A stretch of DNA of 64,000 nt from Auanema rhodensis (taxonomy: Eukaryota; Animalia; Nematoda). The translations under genes were made by a program, and so were the position numbers. Below, one piece after another: positions 1-47,661 of this stretch (within the stretch, counting starts at the first letter, position 1; each line of letters begins with the position of its first letter). The stretch is from NCBI GenBank assembly GCA_964057225.1, contig OZ059894.1:15748001-15812000 (forward strand), in the 5' to 3' direction. The notes under the pieces are model-generated. The model saw only the letters and a list, made by a program, of their open reading frames with translations. It was not told where the DNA came from and ran no database searches.

Positions 1-70
1 AGGAATACTATTCGCGTCATGGTATAAACTACAATGGTTTATATTATCGACGCAGGAGCATAACGGAACG
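1..70 (+). mobile_element. 3' terminus of a structured repeat/mobile-element module, truncated by the window start and joined to the tRNA-array spacer
   Basis: The reverse complement (CGTTCCGTTATGCTCCTGCGTCGAT...TAGTATTCC) aligns colinearly with 9347-9442 and 10484-10581. It ends in the same AGCATAACGGAACG and abuts spacer sequence CCAGAAATCT at 71. Confidence 0.7.
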
Positions 71-3000
71 CCAGAAATCTAATTTATCTATTTTTTTATT
101 TTTTGGTACTACCGATTTAGAATTCATCATACACCTCGGTGTATGCCACATTCGAAGCAGCGTGGCGCAGTGGAAGCGTGCTGGGCCCATAACCCAGAGG
201 TCGGTGGATCGAAACCACTCGCTGCTAGTGTTTTACCGATTCCAGAAATCTAATTTATCTATTTTTTTATTTTTTGGTACTACCGATTTAGAATTCATCA
301 TACACCTCGGTGTATGCCACATTCGAAGCAGCGTGACGCAGTGGAAGCGTGCTGGGCCCATAACCCAGAGGTCGGTGGATCGAAACCACTCGCTGCTAGT
401 GTTTTACCGATTCCAGAAATCTAATTTATCTATTTTTTTATTTTTTGGTACTACCGATTTAGAATTCATCATACACCTCGGTGTATGCCACATTCGAAGC
501 AGCGTGGCGCAGTGGAAGCGTGCTGGGCCCATAACCCAGAGGTCGGTGGATCGAAACCACTCGCTGCTAGTGTTTTACCGATTCCAGAAATCTAATTTAT
601 CTATTTTTTTATTTTTTGGTACTACCGATTTAGAATTCATCATACACCTCGGTGTATGCCACATTCGAAGCAGCGTGGCGCAGTGGAAGCGTGCTGGGCC
701 CATAACCCAGAGGTCGGTGGATCGAAACCACTCGCTGCTAGTGTTTTACCGATTCCAGAAATCTAATTTATCTATTTTTTTATTTTTTGGTACTACCGAT
801 TTAGAATTCATCATACACCTCGGTGTATGCCACATTCGAAGCAGCGTGGCGCAGTGGAAGCGTGCTGGGCCCATAACCCAGAGGTCGGTGGATCGAAACC
901 ACTCGCTGCTAGTGTTTTACCGATTCCAGAAATCTAATTTATCTATTTTTTTATTTTTTGGTACTACCGATTTAGAATTCATCATACACCTCGGTGTATG
1001 CCACATTCGAAGCAGCGTGGCGCAGTGGAAGCGTGCTGGGCCCATAACCCAGAGGTCGGTGGATCGAAACCACTCGCTGCTAGTGTTTTACCGATTCCAG
1101 AAATCTAATTTATCTATTTTTTTATTTTTTGGTACTACCGATTTAGAATTCATCATACACCTCGGTGTATGCCACATTCGAAGCAGCGTGGCGCAGTGGA
1201 AGCGTGCTGGGCCCATAACCCAGAGGTCGGTGGATCGAAACCACTCGCTGCTAGTGTTTTACCGATTCCAGAAATCTAATTTATCTATTTTTTTATTTTT
1301 TGGTACTACCGATTTAGAATTCATCATACACCTCGGTGTATGCCACATTCGAAGCAGCGTGGCGCAGTGGAAGCGTGCTGGGCCCATAACCCAGAGGTCG
1401 GTGGATCGAAACCACTCGCTGCTAGTGTTTTACCGATTCCAGAAATCTAATTTATCTATTTTTTTATTTTTTGGTACTACCGATTTAGAATTCATCATAC
1501 ACCTCGGTGTATGCCACATTCGAAGCAGCGTGGCGCAGTGGAAGCGTGCTGGGCCCATAACCCAGAGGTCGGTGGATCGAAACCACTCGCTGCTAGTGTT
1601 TTACCGATTCCAGAAATCTAATTTATCTATTTTTTTATTTTTTGGTACTACCGATTTAGAATTCATCATACACCTCGGTGTATGCCACATTCGAAGCAGC
1701 GTGGCGCAGTGGAAGCGTGCTGGGCCCATAACCCAGAGGTCGGTGGATCGAAACCACTCGCTGCTAGTGTTTTACCGATTCCAGAAATCTAATTTATCTA
1801 TTTTTTTATTTTTTGGTACTACCGATTTAGAATTCATCATACACCTCGGTGTATGCCACATTCGAAGCAGCGTGGCGCAGTGGAAGCGTGCTGGGCCCAT
1901 AACCCAGAGGTCGGTGGATCGAAACCACTCGCTGCTAGTGTTTTACCGATTCCAGAAATCTAATTTATCTATTTTTTTATTTTTTGGTACTACCGATTTA
2001 GAATTCATCATACACCTCGGTGTATGCCACATTCGAAGCAGCGTGGCGCAGTGGAAGCGTGCTGGGCCCATAACCCAGAGGTCGGTGGATCGAAACCACT
2101 CGCTGCTAGTGTTTTACCGATTCCAGAAATCTAATTTATCTATTTTTTTATTTTTTGGTACTACCGATTTAGAATTCATCATACACCTCGGTGTATGCCA
2201 CATTCGAAGCAGCGTGGCGCAGTGGAAGCGTGCTGGGCCCATAACCCAGAGGTCGGTGGATCGAAACCACTCGCTGCTAGTGTTTTACCGATTCCAGAAA
2301 TCTAATTTATCTATTTTTTTATTTTTTGGTACTACCGATTTAGAATTCATCATACACCTCGGTGTATGCCACATTCGAAGCAGCGTGGCGCAGTGGAAGC
2401 GTGCTGGGCCCATAACCCAGAGGTCGGTGGATCGAAACCACTCGCTGCTAGTGTTTTACCGATTCCAGAAATCTAATTTATCTATTTTTTTATTTTTTGG
2501 TACTACCGATTTAGAATTCATCATACACCTCGGTGTATGCCACATTCGAAGCAGCGTGGCGCAGTGGAAGCGTGCTGGGCCCATAACCCAGAGGTCGGTG
2601 GATCGAAACCACTCGCTGCTAGTGTTTTACCGATTCCAGAAATCTAATTTATCTATTTTTTTATTTTTTGGTACTACCGATTTAGAATTCATCATACACC
2701 TCGGTGTATGCCACATTCGAAGCAGCGTGGCGCAGTGGAAGCGTGCTGGGCCCATAACCCAGAGGTCGGTGGATCGAAACCACTCGCTGCTAGTGTTTTA
2801 CCGATTCCAGAAATCTAATTTATCTATTTTTTTATTTTTTGGTACTACCGATTTAGAATTCATCATACACCTCGGTGTATGCCACATTCGAAGCAGCGTG
2901 GCGCAGTGGAAGCGTGCTGGGCCCATAACCCAGAGGTCGGTGGATCGAAACCACTCGCTGCTAGTGTTTTACCGATTCCAGAAATCTAATTTATCTATTT

Positions 3001-6000
3001 TTTTATTTTTTGGTACTACCGATTTAGAATTCATCATACACCTCGGTGTATGCCACATTCGAAGCAGCGTGGCGCAGTGGAAGCGTGCTGGGCCCATAAC
3101 CCAGAGGTCGGTGGATCGAAACCACTCGCTGCTAGTGTTTTACCGATTCCAGAAATCTAATTTATCTATTTTTTTATTTTTTGGTACTACCGATTTAGAA
3201 TTCATCATACACCTCGGTGTATGCCACATTCGAAGCAGCGTGGCGCAGTGGAAGCGTGCTGGGCCCATAACCCAGAGGTCGGTGGATCGAAACCACTCGC
3301 TGCTAGTGTTTTACCGATTCCAGAAATCTAATTTATCTATTTTTTTATTTTTTGGTACTACCGATTTAGAATTCATCATACACCTCGGTGTATGCCACAT
3401 TCGAAGCAGCGTGGCGCAGTGGAAGCGTGCTGGGCCCATAACCCAGAGGTCGGTGGATCGAAACCACTCGCTGCTAGTGTTTTACCGATTCCAGAAATCT
3501 AATTTATCTATTTTTTTATTTTTTGGTACTACCGATTTAGAATTCATCATACACCTCGGTGTATGCCACATTCGAAGCAGCGTGGCGCAGTGGAAGCGTG
3601 CTGGGCCCATAACCCAGAGGTCGGTGGATCGAAACCACTCGCTGCTAGTGTTTTACCGATTCCAGAAATCTAATTTATCTATTTTTTTATTTTTTGGTAC
3701 TACCGATTTAGAATTCATCATACACCTCGGTGTATGCCACATTCGAAGCAGCGTGGCGCAGTGGAAGCGTGCTGGGCCCATAACCCAGAGGTCGGTGGAT
3801 CGAAACCACTCGCTGCTAGTGTTTTACCGATTCCAGAAATCTAATTTATCTATTTTTTTATTTTTTGGTACTACCGATTTAGAATTCATCATACACCTCG
3901 GTGTATGCCACATTCGAAGCAGCGTGGCGCAGTGGAAGCGTGCTGGGCCCATAACCCAGAGGTCGGTGGATCGAAACCACTCGCTGCTAGTGTTTTACCG
4001 ATTCCAGAAATCTAATTTATCTATTTTTTTATTTTTTGGTACTACCGATTTAGAATTCATCATACACCTCGGTGTATGCCACATTCGAAGCAGCGTGGCG
4101 CAGTGGAAGCGTGCTGGGCCCATAACCCAGAGGTCGGTGGATCGAAACCACTCGCTGCTAGTGTTTTACCGATTCCAGAAATCTAATTTATCTATTTTTT
4201 TATTTTTTGGTACTACCGATTTAGAATTCATCATACACCTCGGTGTATGCCACATTCGAAGCAGCGTGGCGCAGTGGAAGCGTGCTGGGCCCATAACCCA
4301 GAGGTCGGTGGATCGAAACCACTCGCTGCTAGAGTTTTACCGATTCCAGAAATCTAATTTATCTATTTTTTTATTTTTTGGTACTACCGATTTAGAGTTC
4401 ATCATACACCTCGGTGTATGCCACATTCGAAGCAGCGTGGCGCAGTGGAAGCGTGCTGGGCCCATAACCCAGAGGTCGGTGGATCGAAACCACTCGCTGC
4501 TAGTGTTTTACCGATTCCAGAAATCTAATTTATCTATTTTTTTATTTTTTGGTACTACCGATTTAGAATTCATCATACACCTCGGTGTATGCCACATTCG
4601 AAGCAGCGTGGCGCAGTGGAAGCGTGCTGGGCCCATAACCCAGAGGTCGGTGGATCGAAACCACTCGCTGCTAGTGTTTTACCGATTCCAGAAATCTAAT
4701 TTATCTGTTTTTTTATTTTTTGGTACTACCGATTTAGAATTCATCATACACCTCGGTGTATGCCACATTTGAAGCAGCGTGGCGCAGTGGAAGCGTGCTG
4801 GGCCCATAACCCAGAGGTCGGTGGATCGAAACCACTCGCTGCTAGTGTTTTACCGATTCCAGAAATCTAATTTATCTATTTTTTTATTTTTTGGTACTAC
4901 CGATTTAGAATTCATCATACACCTCGGTGTATGCCACATTCGAAGCAGCGTGGCGCAGTGGAAGCGTGCTGGGCCCATAACCCAGAGGTCGGTGGATCGA
5001 AACCACTCGCTGCTAGTGTTTTACCGATTCCAGAAATCTAATTTATCTATTTTTTTATTTTTTGGTACTACCGATTTAGAATTCATCATACACCTCGGTG
5101 TATGCCACATTCGAAGCAGCGTGGCGCAGTGGAAGCGTGCTGGGCCCATAACCCAGAGGTCGGTGGATCGAAACCACTCGCTGCTAGTGTTTTACCGATT
5201 CCAGAAATCTAATTTATCTATTTTTTTATTTTTTGGTACTACCGATTTAGAATTCATCATACACCTCGGTGTATGCCACATTCGAAGCAGCGTGGCGCAG
5301 TGGAAGCGTGCTGGGCCCATAACCCAGAGGTCGGTGGATCGAAACCACTCGCTGCTAGTGTTTTACCGATTCCAGAAATCTGATTTATCTATTTTTTTAT
5401 TTTTTGGTACTACCGATTTAGAATTCATCATACACCTCGGTGTATGCCACATTCGAAGCAGCGTGGCGCAGTGGAAGCGTGCTGGGCCCATAACCCAGAG
5501 GTCGGTGGATCGAAACCACTCGCTGCTAGAGTTTTACCGATTCCAGAAATCTAATTTATCTATTTTTTTATTTTTTGGTACTACCGATTTAGAGTTCATC
5601 ATACACCTCGGTGTATGCCACATTCGAAGCAGCGTGGCGCAGTGGAAGCGTGCTGGGCCCATAACCCAGAGGTCGGTGGATCGAAACCACTCGCTGCTAG
5701 TGTTTTACCGATTCCAGAAATCTAATTTATCTATTTTTTTATTTTTTGGTACTACCGATTTAGAATTCATCATACACCTCGGTGTATGCCACATTCGAAG
5801 CAGCGTGGCGCAGTGGAAGCGTGCTGGGCCCATAACCCAGAGGTCGGTGGATCGAAACCACTCGCTGCTAGTGTTTTACCGATTCCAGAAATCTAATTTA
5901 TCTGTTTTTTTATTTTTTGGTACTACCGATTTAGAATTCATCATACACCTCGGTGTATGCCACATTTGAAGCAGCGTGGCGCAGTGGAAGCGTGCTGGGC

Positions 6001-8363
6001 CCATAACCCAGAGGTCGGTGGATCGAAACCACTCGCTGCTAGTGTTTTACCGATTCCAGAAATCTAATTTATCTATTTTTTTATTTTTTGGTACTACCGA
6101 TTTAGAATTCATCATACACCTCGGTGTATGCCACATTCGAAGCAGCGTGGCGCAGTGGAAGCGTGCTGGGCCCATAACCCAGAGGTCGGTGGATCGAAAC
6201 CACTCGCTGCTAGTGTTTTACCGATTCCAGAAATCTAATTTATCTATTTTTTTATTTTTTGGTACTACCGATTTAGAATTCATCATACACCTCGGTGTAT
6301 GCCACATTCGAAGCAGCGTGGCGCAGTGGAAGCGTGCTGGGCCCATAACCCAGAGGTCGGTGGATCGAAACCACTCGCTGCTAGTGTTTTACCGATTCCA
6401 GAAATCTAATTTATCTATTTTTTTATTTTTTGGTACTACCGATTTAGAATTCATCATACACCTCGGTGTATGCCACATTCGAAGCAGCGTGGCGCAGTGG
6501 AAGCGTGCTGGGCCCATAACCCAGAGGTCGGTGGATCGAAACCACTCGCTGCTAGTGTTTTACCGATTCCAGAAATCTAATTTATCTATTTTTTTATTTT
6601 TTGGTACTACCGATTTAGAATTCATCATACACCTCGGTGTATGCCACATTCGAAGCAGCGTGGCGCAGTGGAAGCGTGCTGGGCCCATAACCCAGAGGTC
6701 GGTGGATCGAAACCACTCGCTGCTAGTGTTTTACCGATTCCAGAAATCTAATTTATCTATTTTTTTATTTTTTGGTACTACCGATTTAGAATTCATCATA
6801 CACCTCGGTGTATGCCACATTCGAAGCAGCGTGGCGCAGTGGAAGCGTGCTGGGCCCATAACCCAGAGGTCGGTGGATCGAAACCACTCGCTGCTAGAGT
6901 TTTACCGATTCCAGAAATCTAATTTATCTATTTTTTTATTTTTTGGTACTACCGATTTAGAGTTCATCATACACCTCGGTGTATGCCACATTCGAAGCAG
7001 CGTGGCGCAGTGGAAGCGTGCTGGGCCCATAACCCAGAGGTCGGTGGATCGAAACCACTCGCTGCTAGTGTTTTACCGATTCCAGAAATCTAATTTATCT
7101 GTTTTTTTATTTTTTGGTACTACCGATTTAGAATTCATCATACACCTCGGTGTATGCCACATTTGAAGCAGCGTGGCGCAGTGGAAGCGTGCTGGGCCCA
7201 TAACCCAGAGGTCGGTGGATCGAAACCACTCGCTGCTAGTGTTTTACCGATTCCAGAAATCTAATTTATCTATTTTTTTATTTTTTGGTACTACCGATTT
7301 AGAATTCATCATACACCTCGGTGTATGCCACATTCGAAGCAGCGTGGCGCAGTGGAAGCGTGCTGGGCCCATAACCCAGAGGTCGGTGGATCGAAACCAC
7401 TCGCTGCTAGTGTTTTACCGATTCCAGAAATCTAATTTATCTATTTTTTTATTTTTTGGTACTACCGATTTAGAATTCATCATACACCTCGGTGTATGCC
7501 ACATTCGAAGCAGCGTGGCGCAGTGGAAGCGTGCTGGGCCCATAACCCAGAGGTCGGTGGATCGAAACCACTCGCTGCTAGTGTTTTACCGATTCCAGAA
7601 ATCTAATTTATCTATTTTTTTATTTTTTGGTACTACCGATTTAGAATTCATCATACACCTCGGTGTATGCCACATTCGAAGCAGCGTGGCGCAGTGGAAG
7701 CGTGCTGGGCCCATAACCCAGAGGTCGGTGGATCGAAACCACTCGCTGCTAGTGTTTTACCGATTCCAGAAATCTAATTTATCTATTTTTTTATTTTTTG
7801 GTACTACCGATTTAGAATTCATCATACACCTCGGTGTATGCCACATTCGAAGCAGCGTGGCGCAGTGGAAGCGTGCTGGGCCCATAACCCAGAGGTCGGT
7901 GGATCGAAACCACTCGCTGCTAGTGTTTTACCGATTCCAGAAATCTAATTTATCTATTTTTTTATTTTTTGGTACTACCGATTTAGAATTCATCATACAC
8001 CTCGGTGTATGCCACATTCGAAGCAGCGTGGCGCAGTGGAAGCGTGCTGGGCCCATAACCCAGAGGTCGGTGGATCGAAACCACTCGCTGCTAGTGTTTT
8101 ACCGATTCCAGAAATCTAATTTATCTATTTTTTTATTTTTTGGTACTACCGATTTAGAATTCATCATACACCTCGGTGTATGCCACATTCGAAGCAGCGT
8201 GGCGCAGTGGAAGCGTGCTGGGCCCATAACCCAGAGGTCGGTGGATCGAAACCACTCGCTGCTAGTGTTTTACCGATTCCAGAAATCTAATTTATCTATT
8301 TTTTGATTTTTTGGTTCTACCGATTTAGAATTCATCATACACCTCGGTGTATGCCACATTCGA
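71..8363 (+). tRNA. Homogeneous tandem array of 48 tRNA-iMet genes, 171-bp unit (72-bp gene + 99-bp spacer)
   Basis: Gene starts fall at 156+171k for k=0..47 (checked at 4773, 5970, 7167, 8193). Only a handful of single-base variants are present. Confidence 0.97.
156..227 (+). tRNA. tRNA-iMet(CAT), first copy of the array
   Basis: AGCAGCGTGGCGCAGTGGAAGCGTGCTGGGCCCATAACCCAGAGGTCGGTGGATCGAAACCACTCGCTGCTA. It has A1-T72, three G-C pairs at the anticodon-stem base, a CAT anticodon and a GATCGAAA T-loop (A54/A60), all eukaryotic initiator hallmarks. T4 and T7 Pol III terminators follow. Confidence 0.97.
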
Positions 8364-9346
8364 AGCAGCGTGGCGCAGTGGAAGCGTGCTGGACCCATAA
8401 CAAAGAGGTCGGTGGATAGTGTTTTATCGATTAAAGAAAACTATTTAAATCAATTTTTTTTGATTTTTTGGTTCTACTGGATCAGAATTTATCATACACC
8501 TCGTAGTAGACCACATTCGAAGCAGCGTGGCGCAGTGGAAGCGTGCTGGGCCCATAACCCAGAGGTCGGTGGATCGAAACCACTCGCTGCTAGTGTTTTA
8601 CCGATTCCAGAAATCTAATTTATCTATTTTTTTATTTTTTGGTACTACCGATTTAGAATTCATCATACACCTCGGTGTATGCCACATTCGAAGCAGCGTG
8701 GCGCAGTGGAAGCGTGCTGGGCCCATAACCCAGAGGTCGGTGGATCGAAACCACTCGCTGCTAGTGTTTTACCGATTCCAGAAATCTAATTTATCTATTT
8801 TTTTATTTTTTGGTACTACCGATTTAGAATTCATCATACACCTCGGTGTATACCACATTCAAAGCAGCGTGGCGCAGTGGAAGCGTGCTGGGCCCATAAC
8901 CCAAAGGTCGGTGGAGGTAGGGCTCTTTTTCCATATCTATACCCCCCAATTTTAGCCCCGCCCCTTTTGCCGTCGAGCGCATACTTTTACTACCAGCTTA
9001 CTTCCCTTCCTAAAACGGGGGGTTTGGAGGGGTGCTGGGCCCATAACAAAGAGGTCGGTGGATAGTGTTTTATCGATTAAAGAAAACTATTTAAATCAAT
9101 TTTTTTTGATTTTTTGGTTCTACTGGATCAGAATTTATCATACACCTCGTAGTAGACCACATTCGAAGCAGCGTGGCGCAGTGGAAGCGTGCTGGGCCCA
9201 TAACCCAGAGGTCGGTGGATCGAAACCACTCGCTGCTATTTTTTTACCAATTCCAGAAATCTAATTTATCAATTTTTTGATTTTTGGGTTCTACCGATTT
9301 AGAATTCATCATACACCTCGGTGTATGCCACATTCGAAGCAGCGTG
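8364..9346 (+). tRNA. Mixed tRNA-iMet units: intact copies at 8521, 8692 and 9167; T-arm-deleted pseudogene at 8364; interrupted copies at 8863 and 9338
   Basis: Direct comparison with the consensus unit. Deleted units read GGTGGAT^AGTG, a 17-nt loss of CGAAACCACTCGCTGCT. Confidence 0.9.
8916..9031. other. 116-bp foreign GC-rich insertion inside a tRNA unit
   Basis: The tRNA stops after GGTCGGTGGA (8915) and array sequence resumes at GTGCTGGGCCC (9032). The insert has no similarity to the array and contains a GC box and an inverted repeat. Confidence 0.8.
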
Positions 9347-9442
9347 CGTTCCGTTATGCTACCGCGTCGATCTTACAGACCAATGGAGTCCAAGATGAGC
9401 GTGGTAGTATTCCAGATGTAGCGGTTAAACATGGAGCATAAG
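9347..9442 (-). repeat. Structured ~96-nt module, copy A
   Basis: Direct repeat of 10484-10581, differing by 3 substitutions and one 2-bp indel. Confidence 0.93.
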
Positions 9443-10483
9443 TCGCGTCCGCAATACAAGGTTCGTTAATCAATGCACATCTTGAATGCATAAGATCTTG
9501 AAATTCAAAACTTGAATTCCCGGTGAAAGTTTGACAGTTGGAATAGAATACACAGGATTCAGCAATAGACTTGAGAAGAAGAGTTTTTCCGGAATGCGGT
9601 TGGCGTATAATGAAAAGAGCGTTGACTTTAGGATTTTGCTTGTCTATTATATTATAGACATTATTAACAAAAATTGAAATATCAATATTATTGTGATCCA
9701 TCATACGTTCGAATCATTTCAAGAACTCGTTCACAGATAAAACTGGTGCAGATTCGTAGTAGTCTGAAGGCACAGTTTCTAGCAATGTCATTCAATCTTT
9801 TTTGATCATAGTCGACTTGAACAGTTCTAATAGTTTGTCGGATAATATTGCAAAGTCCTTGTGCACCACCATCTTCCAACCATCTTCTCGTCCGGCCAAT
9901 ATAGATTGCAAGTCGGTTAGTGTTTTGGGCCAGTGCGATGAAAGTGCGAACTGAATCTCTTCCGCGATTCGGCTCTTTCCAGAAATGGCTGTATTCCCCC
10001 AGTCTTTCTTTCTTCGCTTGGATGGGATTTCATCAGCTCTAAATTCGCTCTCTCCATCAGAAGTTGCAATATCGGATCCTCCATCGTCAAGTACAGTCTC
10101 ATTCCTATTTTCTTCTCCTTGCTCATCGGATCCCACATTTGAATTGTTATATTTGTCACATCGGGGGGGGGGGGGGGGGAGTCGTCTTCCAATTGCAAGA
10201 CCTCCACGTGTCTTTCCCCCTTATGTAGATACTCGACGTGGCACTGAAAGCACCGAAGCTTTTTTGTACTGGTTCTTGCTGAATACTAATGTTCTCCAGC
10301 CAATATGCACATAAACTAAAATATTTATTTAAAAAATAACTACACATTTATCAAACAAGAAACATAAGATATCTTCGAATAATTCAAAGTTAAAACGAAA
10401 AATTTCAAAATTGTGTTCCACATTTGGAGGATGAAGAATGAGAAGGAAAACAAATTTGTGATAAGTTCGAGGTGGAACCTCCA
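9443..10483 (-). pseudogene. Endogenous parvovirus/densovirus-like NS1 (Rep, SF3 helicase) fragment
   Basis: One reading frame with stops at 10329-31, 10221-23, 9792-94 and 9714-16 joins NILVYVHIGWR (possible nickase Tyr motif), an acidic/basic linker, KVNALFIIRQPHSGKT (Walker A, GxxxxGKT with G>R) and FEFQDLMHSRCALINEP (Walker B, densovirus-type NEP). The frame is cut off just after Walker B. Confidence 0.85.
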
Positions 10484-10581
10484 CGTTCCGTTATGCTCCC
10501 TCGTCGATCTTACAGACCAATGGAGTCTACAAGATGACCGTGGTAGTATTCCAGATGTAGCGGTTAAACATGGAGCATAAG
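10484..10581 (-). repeat. Structured ~98-nt module, copy B
   Basis: Outer stem TTATGCTCC/GGAGCATAA. Inner hairpin on the minus strand is GTCATCTTGTAGAC-TCCATTG-GTCTGTAAGATCGAC. Confidence 0.93.
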
Positions 10582-10841
10582 GATAAACATAAGACTCGAG
10601 AAAGATTGGTTCATTATATCTACGTGATTACAATAAGATACATATAACTAAGTAAAGGTTAAACTAATAGAGAACAGAGAGAGAACGACCAACCATCCAT
10701 GATCGTCCCTGAGGCAGAGCTGAAGTGTTGTAATATGGAAAAGGGCGGGTCGTCTTCTCTCAGTCTCGCATTCTCTGACTCTAACCTGCCTGCTACAGCT
10801 TCGTCATATGAATGTAATGCATTGATCATCCGAATGGAACT

Positions 10842-10908
10842 CGTGGCGCAGTGGAAGCGTGCTGGGCCCATAACCCAGAGGTCGGTGGATCGAAACCACT
10901 CGCTGCTA
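10842..10908 (+). pseudogene. 3' part (nt 6-72) of the tRNA-iMet gene split by the insertion
   Basis: Matches the consensus from nt 6. A and B boxes are retained, but the 5' acceptor strand is replaced by insert sequence. Confidence 0.9.
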
Positions 10909-10935
10909 GTGTTTTACCGATTCTTTTGTTTGTGA

Positions 10936-13900
10936 TCTACAACGAGGTGTATGATGAATTCTGAATCGGTAGAACCAAAAAATCAAAAAATTGATAAATT
11001 AGATTTCTGGAATCAGTAAAACACTAGCAGCGAGTGGTTTCGATCCACCGACCTCTGGGTTATGGGCCCAGCACGCTTCCACTGCGCCACGCTGCTTCGA
11101 ATGTGGATTACTACGAGGTGTATGATAAATTCTGATTCAGTAGAACCAAAAAATCAAAGAAAATTGATTCAAATACTTTTCTTTAATCGATGAAACACTA
11201 TCCACCGACCTCTTTGTTATGGGCCCAGCACACTTCCACTGCGTCACCCTGCTTCGAATGTGGTCTACTACGAGGTGTATGAAAAATTCTGATTCAGTAG
11301 AACCAAAAAATCAAAAAATTGATGAATTAGATTTCTGGAATCGGTGAAACACTAGCAGCGAGTGGTTTCGATCCACCGACCTCTGGGTTATGGGCTCAGC
11401 ACACTTCCACTGCGTCACCCTGCTTCAAATGTGGTCTACAACGAGGTGTATGATGAATTCTGAATCGGTACAACCAAAAAATCAAAAAATTGATAAATTA
11501 GATTTCTGGAATCGGTAAAACACTAGCAGCGAGTGGTTTCGATCCACCGACCTCTGGGTTATGGGCCCAGCACGCTTCCACTGCGCCACGCTGCTTCGAA
11601 TATGGTCTACAACGAGGTGTATAATAAATTCTGATTCAGTAGAACCAAAAAATCAAAGAAAATTGATTCAAATAGTTTTCTTTAATCGATGAAACACTAT
11701 CCACCGACCTCTTTGTTATGGGCCCAGCACACTTCCACTGCGTCACCCTGCTTCGAATGTGGTCTACTACGAGGTGTATGAAAAATTCTGATTCAGTAGA
11801 ACCAAAAAATCAAAAAATTAATAAATTAGATTTCTGGAATCGGTAAAACACTAGCAGCGAGTGGTTTCGATCCACCGATCTCTGGGTTATGGGCTCAGCA
11901 CACTTCCACTGCGTCACCCTGCTTCGAATGTGGTCTACTACGAGGTGTATGAAAAATTCTGATTCAGTAGAACCAAAAAATCAAAAAATTGATAAATTAG
12001 ATTTCTGGAATCGGTAAAACACTAGCAGCGAGTGGTTTCGATCCACCGACCTCTGGGTTATGGGCTCAGCACACTTCCACTGCGTCACCCTGCTTCGAAT
12101 GTGGTCTACAACGAGGTGTATGATGAATTCTGAATCGGTAGAACCAAAAAATCAACAAATTGATTAATTAGATTTCTGGAATCGGTAAAACACTAGCAGC
12201 GAGTGGTTTCGATCCACCGACCTCTGGGTTATGGGCTCAGCACACTTACACTGCGTCACCCTGCTTCGAATGTGGTCTACAACGAGGTGTATGATGAATT
12301 CTGAATCGGTAGAACCAAAAAATCAAAAAATTGATAAATTAGATTTCTGGAATCGGTAAAACACTAGCAGCGAGTGGTTTCGATCCACCGACCTCTGGGT
12401 TATGGGCCCAGCACGCTTCCACTGCGCCACGCTGCTTCGAATATGGTCTACAACGAGGTGTATAATAAATTCTGATTCAGTAGAACCAAAAAATCAAAGA
12501 AAATTGATTCAAATAGTTTTCTTTAATCGATGAAACACTATCCACCGACCTCTTTGTTATGGGCCCAGCACACTTCCACTGCGTCACCCTGCTTCGAATG
12601 TGGTCTACTACGAGGTGTATGAAAAATTCTGATTCAGTAGAACCAAAAAATCAAAAAATTGATAAATTAGATTTCTGGAATCGGTAAAACAATAGAAGCG
12701 AGTGGTTTCGATCCACCGACCTCTGGGTTATGGGCTCAGCACACTTCCACTGCGTCACCCTGCTTCGAATGTGGTCTACAACGAGGTGTATGATGAATTC
12801 TGAATCGGTAGAACCAAAAAATCAAAAAATTGATAAATTAGATTTCTGGAATCGGTAAAACACTAGCAGCGAGTGGTTTCGATCCACCGACCTCTTTGTT
12901 ATGGGCCCAGCACACTTCCACTGCGTCACCTGCTTCGAATGTGGTCTACTACGAGGTGTATGAAAAATTCTGATTCAGTAGAACCAAAAAATCAAAAAAT
13001 TGATAAATTAGATTTCTGGAATCGGTAAAACAATAGAAGCGAGTGGTTTCGATCCACCGACCTCTGGGTTATGGGCTCAGCACACTTCCACTGCGTCACC
13101 CTGCTTCGAATGTGGTCTACAACGAGGTGTATGATGAATTCTGAATCGGTAGAACCAAAAAATCAAAAAATTGATAAATTAGATTTCTGGAATCGGTAAA
13201 ACACTAGCAGCGAGTGGTTTCGATCCACCGACCTCTGGGTTATGGGCCCAGCACGCTTCCACTGCGCCACGCTGCTTCGAATGTGGTCTACAACGAGGTG
13301 TATGATGAATTCTGAATCGGTAGAACCAAAAAATCAAAAAATTGATAAATTAGATTTCTGGAATCGGTAAAACACTAGCAGCGAGTGGTTTCGATCCACC
13401 GACCTCTGGGTTATGGGCCCAGCACGCTTCCACTGCGCCACGCTGCTTCGAATGTGGCCTACAACGAGGTGTATGATGAATTCTGAATCGGTAGAACCAA
13501 AAAATCAACAAATTGATTAATTAGATTTCTGGAATCGGTAAAACACTAGCAGCGAGTGGTTTCGATCCACCGATCTCTGGGTTATGGGCCCAGCACGCTT
13601 CCACTGCGCCACGCTGCTTCGAATGTGGTCTACTACGAGGTGTATGAAAAATTCTGATTCAGTAGAACCAAAAAATCAAAAAATTGATAAATTAGATTTC
13701 TGGAATCGGTAAAACACTAGCAGCGAGTGGTTTCGATCCACCGATCTCTGGGTTATGGGCTCAGCACACTTCCACTGCGTCACCCTGCTTCGAATGTGGT
13801 CTACAACGAGGTGTATGATGAATTCTGAATCGGTAGAACCAAAAAATCAAAAAATTGATAAATTAGATTTCTGGAATCGGTAAAACACTAGCAGCGAGTG

Positions 13901-16727
13901 GTTTCGATCCACCGACCTCTGGGTTATGGGCCCAGCACGCTTCCACTGCGCCACGCTGCTTCGAATGTGGTCTACAACGAGGTGTATGATGAATTCTGAA
14001 TCGGTAGAACCAAAAAATCAAAAAATTGATAAATTAGATTTCTGGAATCGGTAAAACACTAGCAGCGAGTGGTTTCGATCCACCGACCTCTGGGTTATGG
14101 GCCCAGCACGCTTCCACTGCGCCACGCTGCTTCGAATGTGGTCTACAACGAGGTGTATGATGAATTCTGAATCGGTAGAACCAAAAAATCAACAAATTGA
14201 TTAATTAGATTTCTGGAATCGGTAAAACACTAGCAGCGAGTGGTTTCGATCCACCGATCTCTGGGTTATGGGCCCAGCACGCTTCCACTGCGCCACGCTG
14301 CTTCGAATGTGGTCTACTACGAGGTGTATGAAAAATTCTGATTCAGTAGAACCAAAAAATCAAAAAATTGATAAATTAGATTTCTGGAATCGGTAAAACA
14401 CTAGCAGCGAGTGGTTTCGATCCACCGACCTCTGGGTTATGGGCCCAGCACGCTTCCACTGCGCCACGCTGCTTCGAATGTGGTCTACAACGAGGTGTAT
14501 GATGAATTCTAAATCGGTAGAACCAAAAAATTAAAAAATTGATAAATTAGATTTCAGGAATCGGTAAAACACTAGCAGCGAGTGGTTTCGATCCACCGAC
14601 CTCTGGGTTATGGGCCCAGCACGCTTCCACTGCGCCACGCTGCTTCGAATGTGGTCTACTACGAGGTGTATGATAAATTCTGATCCAGTAGAACCAAAAA
14701 ATCAAAAAAAATTGATTTAAATAGTTTTCTTTAATCGATAAAACACTATCCACCGACCTCTTTGTTATGGGCCCAGCACGCTTCCACTGCGCCACGCTGC
14801 TTCGAATGTGGTCTACAACGAGGTGTATGATGAATTCTGAATCGGTAGAACCAAAAAATCAAAAAATTGATAAATTAGATTTCTGGAATCGGTAAAACAC
14901 TAGCAGCGAGTGGTTTCGATCCACCGACCTCTGGGTTATGGGCCCAGCACGCTTCCACTGCGCCACGCTGCTTCGAATGTGGTCTACTACGAGGTGTATG
15001 AAAAATTCTGATTCAGTAGAACCAAAAAATCAAAAAAAATTGATTTAAATAGTTTTCTTTAATCGATAAAACACTATCCACCGACCTCTTTGTTATGGGC
15101 CCAGCACGCTTCCACTGCGCCACGCTGCTTCGAATGTGGTCTACTACGAGGTGTATGATAAATTCTGATCCAGTAGAACCAAAAAATCAAAAAATTGATT
15201 TAAATAGTTTTCTTTAATCGATAAAACACTATCCACCAATATCTTTGTTATGGGCCCAGCACACTTCCACTGCGTCACCCTGCTTCGAATGTGGTCTACA
15301 ACAAGGTATATGATGAATTCTGAATCGGTAGAACCAAAAAATCAAAAAATTGATAAATTAGATTTCTGGAATCGGTAAAACACTAGCAGCGAGTGGTTTC
15401 GATCCACCGACCTCTGGGTTATGGGCCCAGCACGCTTCCACTGCGCCACGCTGCTTCGAATGTGGTCTACTACGAGGTGTATGATAAATTCTGATCCAGT
15501 AGAACCAAAAAATCAAAAAAAATTGATTTAAATAGTTTTCTTTAATCGATAAAACACTATCCACCGACCTCTTTGTTATGGGCCCAGCACGCTTCCACTG
15601 CGCCACGCTGCTTCGAATGTGGTCTACAACGAGGTGTATGATGAATTCTGAATCGGTAGAACCAAAAAATCAAAAAATTGATAAATTAGATTTCTGGAAT
15701 CGGTAAAACACTAGCAGCGAGTGGTTTCGATCCACCGACCTCTGGGTTATGGGCCCAGCACGCTTCCACTGCGCCACGCTGCTTCGAATGTGGTCTACTA
15801 CGAGGTGTATGAAAAATTCTGATTCAGTAGAACCAAAAAATCAAAAAAAATTGATTTAAATAGTTTTCTTTAATCGATAAAACACTATCCACCGACCTCT
15901 TTGTTATGGGCCCAGCACGCTTCCACTGCGCCACGCTGCTTCGAATGTGGTCTACTACGAGGTGTATGATAAATTCTGATCTAGTAGAACCAAAAAATCA
16001 AAAAATTGATTTAAATAGTTTTCTTTAATCGATAAAACACTATCCACCAATATCTTTGTTATGGGCCCAGCACACTTCCACTGCGTCACCCTGCTTCGAA
16101 TGTGGTCTACAACAAGGTATATGATGAATTCTGAATCGGTAGAACCAAAAAATCAAAAAATTGATAAATTAGATTTCTGGAATCGGTAAAACACTAGCAG
16201 CGAGTGGTTTCGATCCACCGACCTCTGGGTTATGGGCCCAGCACGCTTCCACTGCGCCACGCTGCTTCGAATGTGGTCTACTACGAGGTGTATGATAAAT
16301 TCTGATCCAGTAGAACCAAAAAATCAAAAAATTGATTTAAATAGTTTTCTTTAATCGATAAAACACTATCCACCAATATCTTTGTTATGGGCCCAGCACA
16401 CTTCCACTGCGTCACCCTGCTTCGAATGTGGTCTACAACGAGGTGTATGATGAATTCTGAATCGGTAGAACCAAAAGTAAAAAATTGATAAATTAGATTT
16501 CAGGAATCGGTAAAACAATAGCAGCGAGTTGTTTCGATCCACCGACCTCTGGGTTATGGGCCCAGCACGCTTCCACTGCGCCACGCTGCTTCGAATGTGG
16601 TCTACTACGAGGTGTATGAAAAATTCTGATTCAGTAGAACCAAAAAATCAAAAAAAATTGATTTAAATAGTTTTCTTTAATCGATAAAACAGATTAAAAC
16701 ACTATCCACCGACATCTGGGTTGTGGG
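10936..16727 (-). tRNA. Inverted, heterogeneous tRNA-iMet array of ~34 units (about 16 near-intact, 8 multiply mutated, 10 T-arm-deleted) plus a terminal fragment
   Basis: Reverse-complement tRNA copies, the first at 11025-11096. Variants include AGCAGGGTGACGCAGTGGAAGTGTGCTGAG and CATAACAAAGAGGTCGGTGGATAGTG. Counts were made by eye. Confidence 0.93.
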
Positions 16728-16778: not shown

Positions 16779-17989
16779 TCAACAAACATTAGATGTATAA
16801 GTTATTGTCTGAATTTCATTTGTTAATGACGTTTTTGCTAATATACTCAGTATACATTGTTTATATTCTTGAACTACGGACATTGTTAAAATAGCGTTGG
16901 TGATGGGGAGAATTCCAAGTGTTATTGTCATATATATTTGTATGAATCGAGGCAGCGACACTCTTAGAACCAAAATAAAGATTTGGAAAGAAATAATTGG
17001 TGTTAGGTATAAAATAGATGGAATAGTGCTCTGAAAATGAAAACAATTAGACTTAATGCATTTGCTTTTCATGATACTTGAATGATGAGTAGTTTAAATA
17101 TATGAGTTTGATATTTTCTCATCGAACTGCTAATTTGAGCATTTCCTTTTAATTTTTTCAAAGTTAGAATTGAGCAACTAATAATTGTTGTAATAGTTCC
17201 GGCACAAATGAAGCAAATACATAGAAGCATAGGCAATCGTCTTCGTTCGGAATTCATCACCTGAAAATATTGCATTGGTTTCGATACTTCTGTCTAATTG
17301 GAGTTTTGTTAATATAGTGTAATCACTTACATCTGCTGATATCCCAATGTAGTAATGATATCGAATATCTACACCAGTATGTTCAACTGTGTAGGTTGCT
17401 ATTCCTTTTTCGTATAGTTCATGTGGACCTGCTCCCAACTGAAGAGCTGATCCCCATAGAAACAAAATAAAGAGATCGACTAAGATGATTTTCACGAAAA
17501 ATGTTTTTTTTGGAGATATTTCAGTATCAAATGACCTGAATGTTTTATGAATTCCTAAACATTGTCTAAATTATCACCTATTTATTACGTAGGAGCGATA
17601 GACAAAACAGTTGCTCAATATGATCATCATAGCAACGATGGACATATTTTCATTATAAGAGATAATGGTGCCAATAGTATAATTAACATATCTAGTTATT
17701 CCAATACCAATAATTATGAAAAAACTATTATCTGATAGAAAAACCTATAAATGTAAATTAAAATACAGAAAATAAAAACAAAAAGAAGTCTAATAATAAA
17801 TAATCTCACTGGTGTTGATATGGCGAAAAAAAAACTATGATGTATATCAATCATAGCATAAGCATATAAAAAGTATTTATATCCACCTAGTTTGCTTGTT
17901 GAACTTTTCTGTATAACATAAATAAAAAAAGAGTTGATCATTATTGATATTGTGCCAGATATGAGGCAATAATAGATAAAAAAGTACAT
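16779..17989 (-). CDS. Serpentine chemoreceptor, Str/Srd-type 7TM GPCR (multi-exon)
   Basis: N-terminal INSFFIYVIQKSSTSKLGGYKYFLYAYAMIDI, C-terminal Q-STIPSILYLTP...LPITNAILTMSVVQEYK, and several hydrophobic helices. Confidence 0.8.
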
Positions 17990-18795
17990 TTCCTTCAAAT
18001 TTGTTGTTAAATCTCCTAAAAGAAGTTTGAAAAGGATTGTATTTATAAAAATGTAAAAAGTGAAAAAAATTATTATTATTTAAAATCAGTCCGCAAATAT
18101 TTGATATTCAAAAGTGTTTTTAAAAGTAAAATAAAGTTAACAAGACATAATAATTAGAAATAATTCTCAAAAGACTATCTATAATATTTTATCATTCAGC
18201 AAGATTCAGATTTAATTAGTTAAAATTGAACAGTATATTTATAAAGCTGCATCAACTATATGTTTTCAAGTCTTCTTATAATAGATGTATATTAGTGCTT
18301 GTGTTATTGATGCTTGTGCTATAAGTATATTACTTCTTCCCACACACGGTTATGGGTATATGAAAATATTTATCAACTTTAAAATATCTCATATTTTCTC
18401 TAATGTATTTTATCACAGAATCGTGAAACAAACGAAAAATACTAATGTTATATCACTTAAACAAATCTTGACATATCTTTGATCTGGAGGCTATGCTTTA
18501 AAAAAATTGTATATATGTCACATAATATATAAAATTTAATTGTATACTATATATCTTATATCTTTCGCGGTTTTTGTAGTTTAGTTATATTGTTTGACCT
18601 TTGACATGATATGTATTCAACGAATGGTGTGATATAAGTTTAGTTATTCATTGGCTTATCTTACGTCCCTCTATCATTCAAGTATATAATTACAATTATT
18701 TTATTTATATTTCTCGTCTTTTTTGATAAATATTTCAATTAATTATGTACGTATTCAATTGTTTTCAATAATAGTTGCTTTGCTTATCAGGTCAA

Positions 18796-45571: not shown

Positions 45572-47661
45572 ATGATAAAACTGTGTTCAATAGTACGTGG
45601 AAAAACCTGGTATACAAAAGTTATCGTTCATTTTAGATTTCATTTTTTTTCAGCATTCGAGTAACCCAGCAATTGAATTATATTCATTCGTCTCGTCTTA
45701 TATCAGAAATGTGTTCTAATGATGATAGAAAAGGCAATGAGGTTTATTGAATAAATTAAATAGTTAATTTTTAGAAAAACAATTATCCATACCTGAGTTA
45801 GTTCGTGGAATGGTTGAACTTGAAACTACCAAATTCATGTGCGGTTTACTGTGTATAATTCAATTTCTTAGTTCATTTCAGGAAACTTATCAATTTCCCA
45901 GTTATTGAAATAGATGCTAAGGATGTAAATGCTATTCGTGGCAAAGTACGCCTTGAAGCATATCTTCTGAAAAACCTAGGTAATATTAAGGTATAACTAT
46001 ATTTTAAACATGAAAGAATGCATGGTTTCAGAATTTAATGAACTCAATCAACGACAAAAATAAACGGCTCTTGGTATTCGATCCGGACACAGTTTCGGAT
46101 GATAATGACAATGTAAGGCAAGAAATTTTATCTAAGATTAGTGATGTTTTGCCAGGTAATATCAAGTTGGGAGTGAGTGTGTAAATCTTGTACTTAAGAT
46201 AAATCCTACAATTGGTCAAAGCACTCATTAGATATAACTTTTGATGATTGGGATATGAGACGTATTATACGAGCAGTATTACCAATGAATCTAGATTTCA
46301 GGTTTGATTTACAAATTTTTAAAATTACTGTTAAGCAGTTTTCAGCAGTTTCACACAAACAGGTCATATTATTCATTGTAATTTCCGTGATGATATGCAA
46401 CCATATAAGAAAATAATTGGTCAGATATTACTAAGAAAAGTGAACAAGTGCAGGTTGATTTTCATTTTCTACAAATTATATAGCTATGATATTTTCAGAA
46501 CAGTTGTTAATAAAATTGATGGTATCACCAGTGAATTCCGTAACTTTGAAATTGAGTTGGTGGCTGGGGAACCAGAATACGTTGCTGAAGTTTTGGAAGG
46601 CGGAATGCGCTATAAATTGGATTTTAGTAAAGTTTGTCCTTGTATTGTTTCTGCATTTTAATAAAAGATTTAGGTCTTCTGGAATTCTCGTTTAAGCTTT
46701 GAACATGAACGAGTTATGCAGTTTTTTAATTCTCGTTCATTAAGTCAGTTTTATAAATTATATTTCAGCATTTAAATGATCGAATATGTATTTAGTATTT
46801 GACGCATGTGCTGGTGTTGGGCCATTTGTTATTCCTGTTGTTAAAAAAGTTCATGCCCGTAAAGTTGTTGCTAACGATTTGAATCCTGAGAGCGTGAGAT
46901 GGCTGAAGGAAAATCTCAAGTTGAATAAGGTATTTTATTATATAATTTAGAGTTTGCTGAATTATTCTTCATTTAGATTATTAGTTCAGAAATTGATGTT
47001 CATAATATGGACGCTGTTGATTTTATTAAAGGACCCTTTTCTGATGATTTGGTGAAAGTAAGTTGTGCTTATATCCTTACTTTCTATTCAAATGTTCAAG
47101 GCTATAAAAATCAAGAAATCCGATCCCGAATTAGCTCCAACATCGGGAGCTCATATTTTGATGAATCTTCCTGCGTATGCTATCAATTTTCTTCCTGCAT
47201 TTAAGTATGAGATTGATTATATTTATCAGCTTGATTCTAATCTTACAGGGGAATTCTTCATAATAAGTTAAAAGATGATGATGTTCCAGAAGATATGTTC
47301 CCAATTATCATATATTGCTATTTGTTCGTTAAGGTGAGATTATATATATTTTATATTTTATAGTTATTGTTTTTTTAGGCTCATGAAGAAGTACCAGATG
47401 AATATTTTTCAACGAAAGCTAAGGAATACGTATTAGAGAAGCTAGATTGTCCTGATGCTGATATTAAGTTGATTCATCATGTAAACCTCTTCTTGCTCAT
47501 TGTTGTCTTAATGCAATTTTTCATTTTAGATTCGTACGGTGTCATCTCGTAAAGAAATGTTCTGTGTTCAAGTTCAAGTTCCTCTGAAGTTTTTAAGAGA
47601 AAGTAATTGCTCTGATAGCGAACCAGAAGCAAAGAAGTTAAAGCTAGATAATACGTGTTAG
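45572..47661 (+). CDS. TRMT5: tRNA (guanine37-N1)-methyltransferase TRM5
   Basis: [63 protein letters not shown] and MNLP. Confidence 0.95.

Follow-up and report, generated by a model that had tools for sequence, protein, structure and literature searches.

The window, that is, the whole 64-kb stretch of nematode DNA analysed here, contains 67 tRNA-Met(CAT) genes with a period of 171 bp, as called by ARAGORN, which lie on the plus strand up to position 9238 and on the minus strand from 11025. The near-identical 171-bp units form an array of 16.6 kb, whose spacer pattern is absent from the metagenome contigs that we searched. The features of the locus are listed in Table 1.

One tRNA-iMet gene of this array is split after nucleotide 9 by an insert of 1,495 bp (9347-10841). 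The 4-bp sequence CGTG is duplicated on the two sides of the insert, at 9343-9346 and 10842-10845, and no other tRNA sequence is missing. The first-pass annotation of this DNA had already described the split and the duplication, in agreement with both the period of the array and the Rfam match of the 3' part, in which 10842-10908 corresponds to positions 6-65 of the tRNA model at 37.3 bits. The first unit of the minus-strand arm is an intact mirror image of the split unit and can be used as an internal 'empty site'. A 17-nt homopolymer run is also present at the locus, and a second, unrelated filler of 112 bp lies within the array at 8918-9029. Rfam matches to microRNAs at 10863-11070 were discarded, as they represent the array palindrome and score far under the gathering thresholds.

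Table 1. Features of the locus in window coordinates
Feature	Position	Strand	Basis or remark
Module copy C, partial (cut by the start of the window), diverged	1-70	+ (sense strand)	Orientation opposite to that of copies A and B; covariance model 60.7 bits, E 1.4e-14
Array, plus-strand arm, 171-bp units (context)	71-9337	+	
Split tRNA-iMet, 5' part, nt 1-9	9338-9346	+	CGTG at 9343-9346 is the left duplication copy; position expected from the array period of 171 bp, starting at the intact unit 9167-9238
Module copy A, 96 nt	9347-9442	-	Repeat comparison; covariance model 110 bits; strand from hairpin pairing pattern
Decayed parvovirus-family NS1/Rep fragment, pre-helicase region to just past Walker B	9441-10282	-	tblastn outer bounds
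AT-rich 201 bp between NS1 likeness and module B	10283-10483	-	No NS1 likeness
Module copy B, 98 nt	10484-10581	-	Repeat comparison; covariance model 123 bits
260-bp segment without relatives, long internal hairpin	10582-10841	-	
Split tRNA-iMet, 3' part, nt 6-72	10842-10908	+	First four bases, CGTG, are the right duplication copy
Array palindrome junction (context)	10909-11024	.	Spacer broken at +15 after the tRNA, then about 20 novel bases, then inverted spacer
Array, minus-strand arm, many mutated units (context)	11025-16590	-	

The NS1/Rep fragment

The insert carries a fragment of a parvovirus-family NS1/Rep gene, in which the SF3 helicase core with Walker A and B is present. Its helicase piece (9444-9713, minus strand) has 209 protein matches, the best of them with an E-value of 2.5e-23 and 52% identity, and the matched proteins carry the Pfam domain Parvo_NS1 (PF01057) with E-values of 1e-17 to 1e-24. 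The relative P0002 in turn matches the solved Rep40/Rep68 and NS1 helicases with an E-value of 6e-16. The helicase piece alone scores 19.2 bits, just below the Pfam cut-off of 20 bits, and a Pfam search of every ORF in the insert yielded only weak NS1 and E1 helicase matches. The fragment is not a complete open NS1 gene with the distal helicase motifs: it contains two in-frame stops and at least one frameshift; its C-terminal part lacks about 88 residues, and at the N-terminus 69 residues or more are missing or cannot be recognized. By its sequence, the cargo of the insert is viral (NS1/Rep) in nature and decayed.

The nearest NS1 relatives are about 50% identical and are encoded on contigs of 2.5-4.5 kb. 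The fragment had previously been labeled as densoviral, a label that the matches do not bear out: in the sources searched, no densovirus or other named virus appears among the nearest relative clusters, and the only designation attached to these clusters stems from a bacterial MAG and reads 'SF3 helicase domain-containing protein'. Close ORF copies were not found in the protein collections searched.

At the end next to module A, the first-pass annotation had NS1 cut in the middle of the helicase, and tblastn places the bound of the NS1 likeness at 9441, so that the gene stops at the module boundary. At the other end, the gene had been drawn up to module B, filling 9443-10483; the likeness covers 9441-10282 of this interval, but the remaining 201 bp show none, and neither does the rest of the insert up to 10841. 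The start of the full-length relatives projects to about 10475-10530 (tblastn), and the 201 bp are possibly a diverged gene start or leader of NS1.

Two pairwise alignments of NS1 relatives extended into the module. The tails of the 157 NS1 relatives match the module no better than chance, the post-Walker-B tail of 156 of the 157 has its best match elsewhere in the window, and copies B and C do not preserve the frame for an NS1 continuation; the module was therefore rejected as a coding continuation of NS1.

The module repeat and the 358-bp unit

Modules A and B lie in direct orientation and are 94.9% identical over 98 columns (E 1e-38), with three substitutions and one 2-nt indel between them; no inverted pair was found between the two copies. 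As had been noticed before, both start at the same base, sharing the sequence CGTTCCGTTATGCT. Copy C, at the start of the window, is 77% identical to copy B over 70 nt (blastn) and carries the exact CGTTCCGTTATGCT terminus at 57-70 on the minus strand, where it abuts position +14/15 of the array spacer. The same terminal base of the module thereby forms the junction in three contexts (9346/9347, 10483/10484 and 70/71). The target itself varies: copy A sits at nucleotide 9 of the tRNA, antisense to it, and copy C at spacer position +14/15, in the sense of the tRNA. Since copy C occupies a different site in the other orientation, there is no target specificity at the nucleotide level. Neither blastn nor the covariance model with its filters off detects more than these three copies in the window; all three lie inside the 16.6-kb array, and the covariance model finds none in the other 47 kb. 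These observations support the view that the module is repeated in the host genome and that its terminus is fixed.

The modules had also been called structured, which applies to a 15-bp central hairpin that is conserved among the copies, but less so to the modules as a whole, whose folds reach only z-scores of -1.2 to -3.4. On the NS1-sense strand of the hairpin, 42 of the 43 cells are paired (97.7%) and three changes are double-sided, despite the 23% divergence of copy C, in a comparison of three sequences of which two are nearly identical and for which 12 of 500 shuffles reach the same level; on the opposite strand, 79% of the cells pair, with one double-sided change. As the hairpin is kept paired in the diverged copy C, the repeat family appears to be under some structural constraint rather than to be one-off filler. 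NS1, the favored strand of the hairpin and the shared terminus all have one polarity. For the module treated as DNA, folding energies are -10 to -13 kcal/mol, with z-scores of -1.2 to -2.6, and no long palindrome is present. Within 9100-11100, no Rfam family, ribozymes included, matches the module at E-values up to 1, and ARAGORN is silent there; hammerhead ribozymes, which we sought as the criterion for a Penelope-like element or a retrozyme, are likewise absent from this interval at E-values up to 1.

Module B and the adjoining 260-bp segment, which has no NS1 or Pfam likeness, make up a unit of 358 bp (10484-10841). The weakly inverted outer ends reported by the first-pass annotation are borne out in this unit, and by extension in the insert as a whole, with 7 of 9 bases, a level that random pairs reach in 0.3% of cases at offset 0 and in 2% with small offsets. 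When folded, the 358-nt unit has both ends paired and forms long internal hairpins. As a repeat, the 358 bp are represented by one copy, and only 96-98 nt are present twice. The motif GGAAC occurs just twice in the insert, in each case close to the right end of a unit; in the unit 9347-10483, the right end is echoed over only 5-6 nt, and a free local alignment of the two right ends with each other gives no significant likeness (p 0.05 to 0.45). Furthermore, the 5' end of the module has a weak partial re-copy beside module B (p about 0.01).

The ends of LTRs made by integrases usually carry characteristic dinucleotides. The repeat ends seen here differ from these canonical dinucleotides, and the bases following the left repeat are not complementary to tRNA-iMet, the only tRNA available for comparison; the 4-bp CGTG duplication falls within the range of 4-6 bp of LTR retrotransposons. 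ORFs for a reverse transcriptase, endonuclease, integrase or transposase are not found in the 64-kb window. Compared with the first-pass annotation, the third module copy at 1-70, the exclusion of both NS1 coding sequence and a palindromic telomere as the identity of the module, the compensatory changes in the hairpin and the weakly inverted ends of the unit are new.

Origin of the insert

The first-pass annotation had proposed that a mobile element captured the viral gene, and in this general form we consider the proposal the better reading, because the module has a fixed terminus, occurs in direct copies that are neither NS1 sequence nor palindromic, and shows one polarity throughout. The NS1 fragment was thus probably brought in by a mobile element. 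The more specific mechanism put forward, a serial template jump of the R2 type, fares less well: the inverted ends and the clean 4-bp duplication fit an insertion by an integrase or transposase at least as well, and the alternative mentioned in the same annotation, that of an NS1-encoding element which has direct terminal repeats and suffered a deletion, has equal or greater explanatory power.

It is this alternative that we favor, if tentatively: the insert may be one transposed block of a host repeat family with the NS1 fragment as cargo, namely an internally deleted element with direct terminal repeats. On the minus (NS1-sense) strand, the block would begin with a complete 358-bp repeat unit, running from 10841 to 10484 and closing with the 98 nt of the module; it would continue, directly after the repeat, with an internal region carrying the parvovirus-family NS1 gene in the same polarity; and it would end with a second repeat copy, of which only the last 96 nt (module A) would be left after a deletion from the middle of the helicase into this repeat. 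The whole block would have entered in a single insertion, carried out on the repeat ends by an enzyme that the element encoded, for which an integrase-like enzyme and a target-primed reverse transcriptase are candidates. Because of the strand-specific G-U pairs of the hairpin and the single polarity, the family would probably replicate through RNA. NS1 would have joined it earlier, when element and viral nucleic acid recombined or a template switch linked the two, and the inserted copy would then have decayed in place.

A number of observations agree with such a block: the clean CGTG duplication without loss of tRNA sequence, the 95% identity of the direct copies A and B, the same terminal base at three junctions, the hairpin kept paired in the diverged copy C, the inverted ends, the exact bounding of NS1 at module A, the confinement of all three module copies to the array, and a module that is non-palindromic and no NS1 tail. 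Against it stand the lack of a reverse transcriptase, integrase or transposase within the window, the single copy in which the 358-bp repeat is seen, the non-canonical repeat ends without a tRNA-iMet complement, the small set of three sequences behind the covariation, and the shortness of the inverted ends, which may be due to chance. Moreover, the unit with the insert adjoins the centre of the array palindrome, which hints at a break-repair event.

The R2-type serial jump is possible but somewhat doubtful. Here, a non-LTR target-primed reverse transcriptase would have nicked the tRNA gene, copied the 3' module of its element and switched to an NS1 transcript. Having reached the 5' end of this transcript, it would have continued at the 3' end of another element RNA (module B and at least 260 nt), and the product would have been joined to the target with a 4-bp duplication. 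Such serial jumping by the reverse transcriptases of retroelements is documented (PMC8594491), as are in vivo jumps of R2, whose protein binds its own 3' UTR, to snRNA and tRNA (PMC3414825). The precise 3' terminus (in NS1 sense) that is shared by the two outer junctions and the inner one at 10483/10484 is what an end-to-end jump predicts, the polarity is the same throughout, the hairpin close to this terminus favors the sense strand in its pairing, as a 3' recognition element would, and the NS1 piece ends close to the projected gene start; the partial re-copy beside module B would also fit. R2 elements resemble our case in their location in a multicopy RNA gene array, their precise, tail-less 3' junction, perhaps their structured 3' end and, on this model, their jump-made chimeras, and they are known for 3' UTR recognition and for internally deleted SIDEs (PMC3414825). 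However, in the R2 jumps that are documented, a full element gained a small cellular RNA at its 5' end, whereas here a piece of a viral gene lies between two element ends. Of the properties of site-specific non-LTR elements, the constant 3' terminus is seen in three contexts, but the window contains neither a linked ORF for a reverse transcriptase or restriction-like endonuclease nor a constant target site and orientation, given the placement of copy C. In addition, the switch into NS1 falls inside the gene and not at an RNA end, the weakly inverted ends are not predicted, the insert matches no Rfam ribozyme or other RNA family, and three rare switches would be needed in one event.

A purely DNA-level event, of which two forms come into question, is unlikely. 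The 358-bp unit could be a short TIR transposon that, together with a partial second copy and the NS1 DNA enclosed by the two, moved as a composite. Alternatively, the array could have suffered a double-strand break whose repair by replication-based template switching stitched in existing segments and made the adjacent inverted duplication. The 7/9 inverted ends and the 4-bp duplication around the whole composite point in this direction, as does the fold of the 358-nt unit, which resembles those of miniature TIR elements. Likewise, of all plus-strand units it is the last one ahead of the palindrome centre that holds the insert, a placement that applies to about 2 of the 97 units; the palindrome junction and the junction of copy C interrupt the array spacer at one and the same position; and the 112-bp sequence at 8918-9029 would be a second instance of filler. 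Yet the window contains no transposase, strand-specific G-U pairing is not expected of a DNA transposon, random filler leaves the threefold junction at one terminal base unexplained, and the unit 9347-10483 has only its 5-6-nt echo at the right end. Dada, a known family of transposons with a DDE transposase and no terminal inverted repeats that targets tRNA and snRNA genes, shares the insertion into a multicopy tRNA gene and the short target duplication, but its duplications are 6-7 bp long (PMC3706591). The duplication here has 4 bp, on which ground we reject membership in this family; a transposase or fixed site is not seen in the window either.

We consider it improbable that the module is a viral terminal or origin sequence, in which case the insert would represent a viral genome, defective or concatemeric, that integrated with its ends retained and its middle lost. 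Defective parvoviral genomes with retained ends are established, the closest relatives sit on contigs of 2.5-4.5 kb, and the module borders on NS1 sequence at one end, while at the other it is found some 200 bp upstream of the recognizable likeness, which is where the left genome end would be. A parvoviral ITR, however, is a long near-perfect palindrome and is inverted at the two ends; the module has no long palindrome, copies A and B are direct, without an inverted pair between them, a 23%-diverged copy with compensatory changes lies elsewhere in the array, and the 260-bp segment resembles neither NS1 nor a Pfam family. Highly improbable, finally, is an assembly artifact, that is, a chimeric read join in the repetitive, palindromic array. 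The 16.6 kb of near-identical units, the adjacent palindrome and the homopolymer run are hard to assemble, but a chimera would not yield tRNA halves that fit to the base with a 4-bp duplication, nor the same module base at three junctions.

The element-borne cargo that we favor has partial parallels in other animals. A survey of endogenous NS1-derived sequences in invertebrates describes fragments that are likewise decayed, with stops, a frameshift and truncation, and that lie in host DNA near repeats, with transposable elements adjacent to them; only one nematode species is among the hosts (PMC5013282). In contrast to these cases, the present fragment combines a nematode host with a tRNA gene of a tandem array, two direct repeat copies and a target duplication. 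In mosquitoes, virus-retrotransposon chimeras and EVEs in LTR retrotransposons similarly join viral to repeat-element sequence, through reverse transcription and recombination followed by germ-line fixation (PMC6797480; bioRxiv 10.1101/127498). The mosquito cases, however, concern RNA viruses, recognizable LTR retrotransposons and piRNA clusters, while here a DNA virus family, an unclassified repeat and a tRNA array are involved.

When relics of DNA viruses are met with in animal genomes, the usual explanation is accidental end-joining. If our reading is true, this locus would provide direct evidence, from sequence, for the ability of a host mobile element to take up a gene of a DNA virus and place it in the germ line, in a phylum, the nematodes, where parvoviral relics are rare. 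The nearest relatives of the fragment further indicate a clade of small NS1-encoding genomes, and the large palindromic tRNA-iMet array emerges as a place that collects insertions. A quite improbable variant is that NS1/Rep was not cargo but the element's own gene, so that the insert would stem from a nematode chromosomal mobile element with a parvovirus-like ancestor. Such an element would have short inverted ends, make a 4-bp target duplication, carry terminal repeats of about 358 bp in direct orientation, and tend to settle in a tRNA-iMet array. In that event, it would represent a kind of Rep/SF3-helicase-encoding element that has not yet been described.

The tRNA-iMet array and its interrupted gene

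The left part of the window is a large palindrome formed by an array of initiator-type tRNA-Met(CAT) genes, 67 of which are called by ARAGORN, those on the + strand reaching 9238 and those on the - strand starting at 11025. Many additional units of the - arm are mutated copies; its numerous tRNA pseudogene units are organized in higher-order repeats, with called genes spaced by about 256, 411 and 768 bp. At the palindrome junction, the sequence passes from spacer position +15 of one arm through about 20 novel bases to the spacer end of the other arm; microRNA matches found there were dismissed as the palindrome itself, with scores far under the gathering level. A unique 112-bp filler between two partial tRNA units is related neither to the insert discussed here nor to anything else in the window. 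A scan of metagenome contigs with a host spacer pattern gave no match. Past 16.6 kb, the G+C content falls to about 30%, and serpentine receptor exons of the Srj/Srd/Str type show that the host is a nematode.

The interruption affects the + unit nearest to the palindrome centre. The gene expected there, 171 bp past the intact unit at 9167, is represented by nucleotides 1-9 only, and its remainder resumes from nucleotide 6 on the far side of the insert (Rfam tRNA model positions 6-65, 37.3 bits). CGTG is found on both flanks and no tRNA sequence is missing. The split after nucleotide 9 described in the first-pass annotation is borne out; CGTG is a 4-bp target duplication around an insert of 1,495 bp. 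The mirror-image unit of the other arm is intact and can be used as an internal empty site.

Coordinates of the array, the insert and neighbouring features
Feature	Positions	Strand	Detail
tRNA-Met(CAT) tandem array	1-16590	+ then - arm	171-bp unit
Palindrome arms	1-10908; 11025-16590		
Palindrome junction (centre)	10909-11024		joins two array arms
Module copy C	1-70	opposite to A and B	
Filler	8918-9029		112 bp
Split tRNA, nt 1-9	9338-9346		
Insert	9347-10841		1,495 bp
Module copy A	9347-9442		
Segment first assigned to NS1	9443-10483		
NS1 likeness, outer bounds	9441-10282	-	tblastn of relatives
Stop-free NS1 piece	9444-9713	-	
Module copy B	10484-10581		
Unit of copy B and 260-bp segment	10484-10841		358 bp
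260-bp segment	10582-10841		
Long imperfect hairpin	10663-10770		
Split tRNA, from nt 6	10842-10908		
Mirror-image unit	11025-11096		intact
Mutated pseudogene units	11097-16518	- arm	
Serpentine chemoreceptor exons (Srj/Srd/Str), nematode-specific, and TYW2/TRM5-like exon	16782-17998; 46395-46658	-; +	

A decayed NS1 fragment between two modules

The stop-free piece of the NS1 fragment matched 209 proteins at E <= 1e-3 (best 2.5e-23, 52% identity). Pfam Parvo_NS1 was present in all 10 matched proteins that were scanned (E 1e-17 to 1e-24), and for one relative, P0002, there is a match to the solved helicases of Rep40/Rep68 and NS1 (E 6e-16). While NS1 had initially been assigned to the whole segment between the modules, its likeness ends at 10282, and none was detected in 10283-10483 or in the 260-bp segment. 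Compared to its relatives, the fragment contains two in-frame stops and at least one frameshift; about 88 residues are missing from its C-terminal end and at least 69 from its N-terminal end. When full-length relatives are projected onto the insert, their start lands no more than a few tens of bases from the copy B boundary. A 17-nt homopolymer run inside the fragment may be genuine or an artefact of sequencing or assembly. The nearest relatives (P0001-P0031 and P0166-P0168) form a clade of proteins of 400-500 residues on Logan/ENA contigs of 2.5-4.5 kb, which are probably small parvovirus-like genomes; one of the proteins carries a bacterial MAG label, probably owing to a binning error. No named match confirms the earlier label ‘densovirus’.

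Copies A and B are direct repeats (94.9% identity, E 1e-38) that begin at the same base, as proposed before, and differ by three substitutions and one 2-nt indel. Copy C is new: it is 77% identical to copy B (covariance model, 60.7 bits), lies at another array site in reversed orientation relative to the tRNAs, and sits at the array's left edge, cut off by the window start; beyond these three, the window holds no copies. Since the CGTTCCG end of copy C also meets array spacer, 14-15 nt past a tRNA end, one terminal module base is a junction in three cases, two of them with host DNA and the third within the insert. This spacer position is the break point both at the copy C junction (70/71) and at the palindrome junction (10923/10924), and may mark the edge of an amplified unit or a fragile site.

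The modules had been described as structured, which holds for a central 15-bp hairpin conserved among the copies, but only mildly for the module as a whole, with z-scores of -1.2 to -2.6 when folded as DNA; when folded as RNA, the scores vary among copies and strands from -1.5 to -4.9. On the NS1-sense strand, 42 of 43 hairpin cells are paired, and three double-sided changes maintain pairing in copy C; on the opposite strand, where G-U pairs turn into A-C, 79% of cells pair, with one double-sided change. This strand-specific conservation is a hint, coming from three sequences, two of them nearly identical, and being reached by 12 of 500 shuffles. No Rfam family matches the module. Two pairwise alignments ran on into it; as NS1 coding sequence it was rejected, given that it matches the tails of 157 relatives no better than background and that the frame is lost in copies B and C.

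Origin of the insert

The ends of the 358-bp unit coincide with those of the block, and the weak inversion reported for them is seen at seven of nine bases, a level that random pairs reach in 0.3% of cases at offset 0 and in 2% when small offsets are allowed. GGAAC occurs twice in the whole insert, each time near the right end of a unit; the right ends of the two units show no significant likeness in a free local alignment. The NS1 fragment, the favoured strand of the hairpin and the shared module terminus have a common polarity. Within the 260-bp segment, the long imperfect hairpin gives a weak match to the mir-14 model (E 0.014), well under the gathering score. The 64-kb window contains no reverse transcriptase, integrase or transposase.

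A single 4-bp duplication encloses the entire block, and the reading that we tentatively rank first is that of an element with direct terminal repeats and an internal deletion; it would have carried NS1 and inserted in one piece. Ranked behind it, and doubtful, is the original proposal that an R2-type, target-primed reverse transcriptase made serial template jumps from module to NS1 to a second element RNA. It accounts for the common module terminus and the single polarity, and R2 jumps and SIDEs (PMC3414825) as well as serial jumping (PMC8594491) are known parallels; however, it leaves the inverted ends unexplained, requires a switch into the interior of NS1, and does not come with the fixed target that would be expected for an element of the R2 type. 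A composite transposon or a break-repair event, both acting at the DNA level, appears unlikely. An integrated defective viral genome that kept its own ends is improbable; unlike parvoviral ends, the module is not a long palindrome, and copies A and B are direct rather than inverted. Last comes an assembly artefact, which we consider very improbable.

Virus-retrotransposon chimeras in mosquitoes (PMC6797480; 10.1101/127498), parvoviral relics adjoining transposable elements (PMC5013282) and Dada elements in tRNA genes (PMC3706591) offer further parallels. Taking the readings together, it is probable that a host mobile element carried the viral fragment in.
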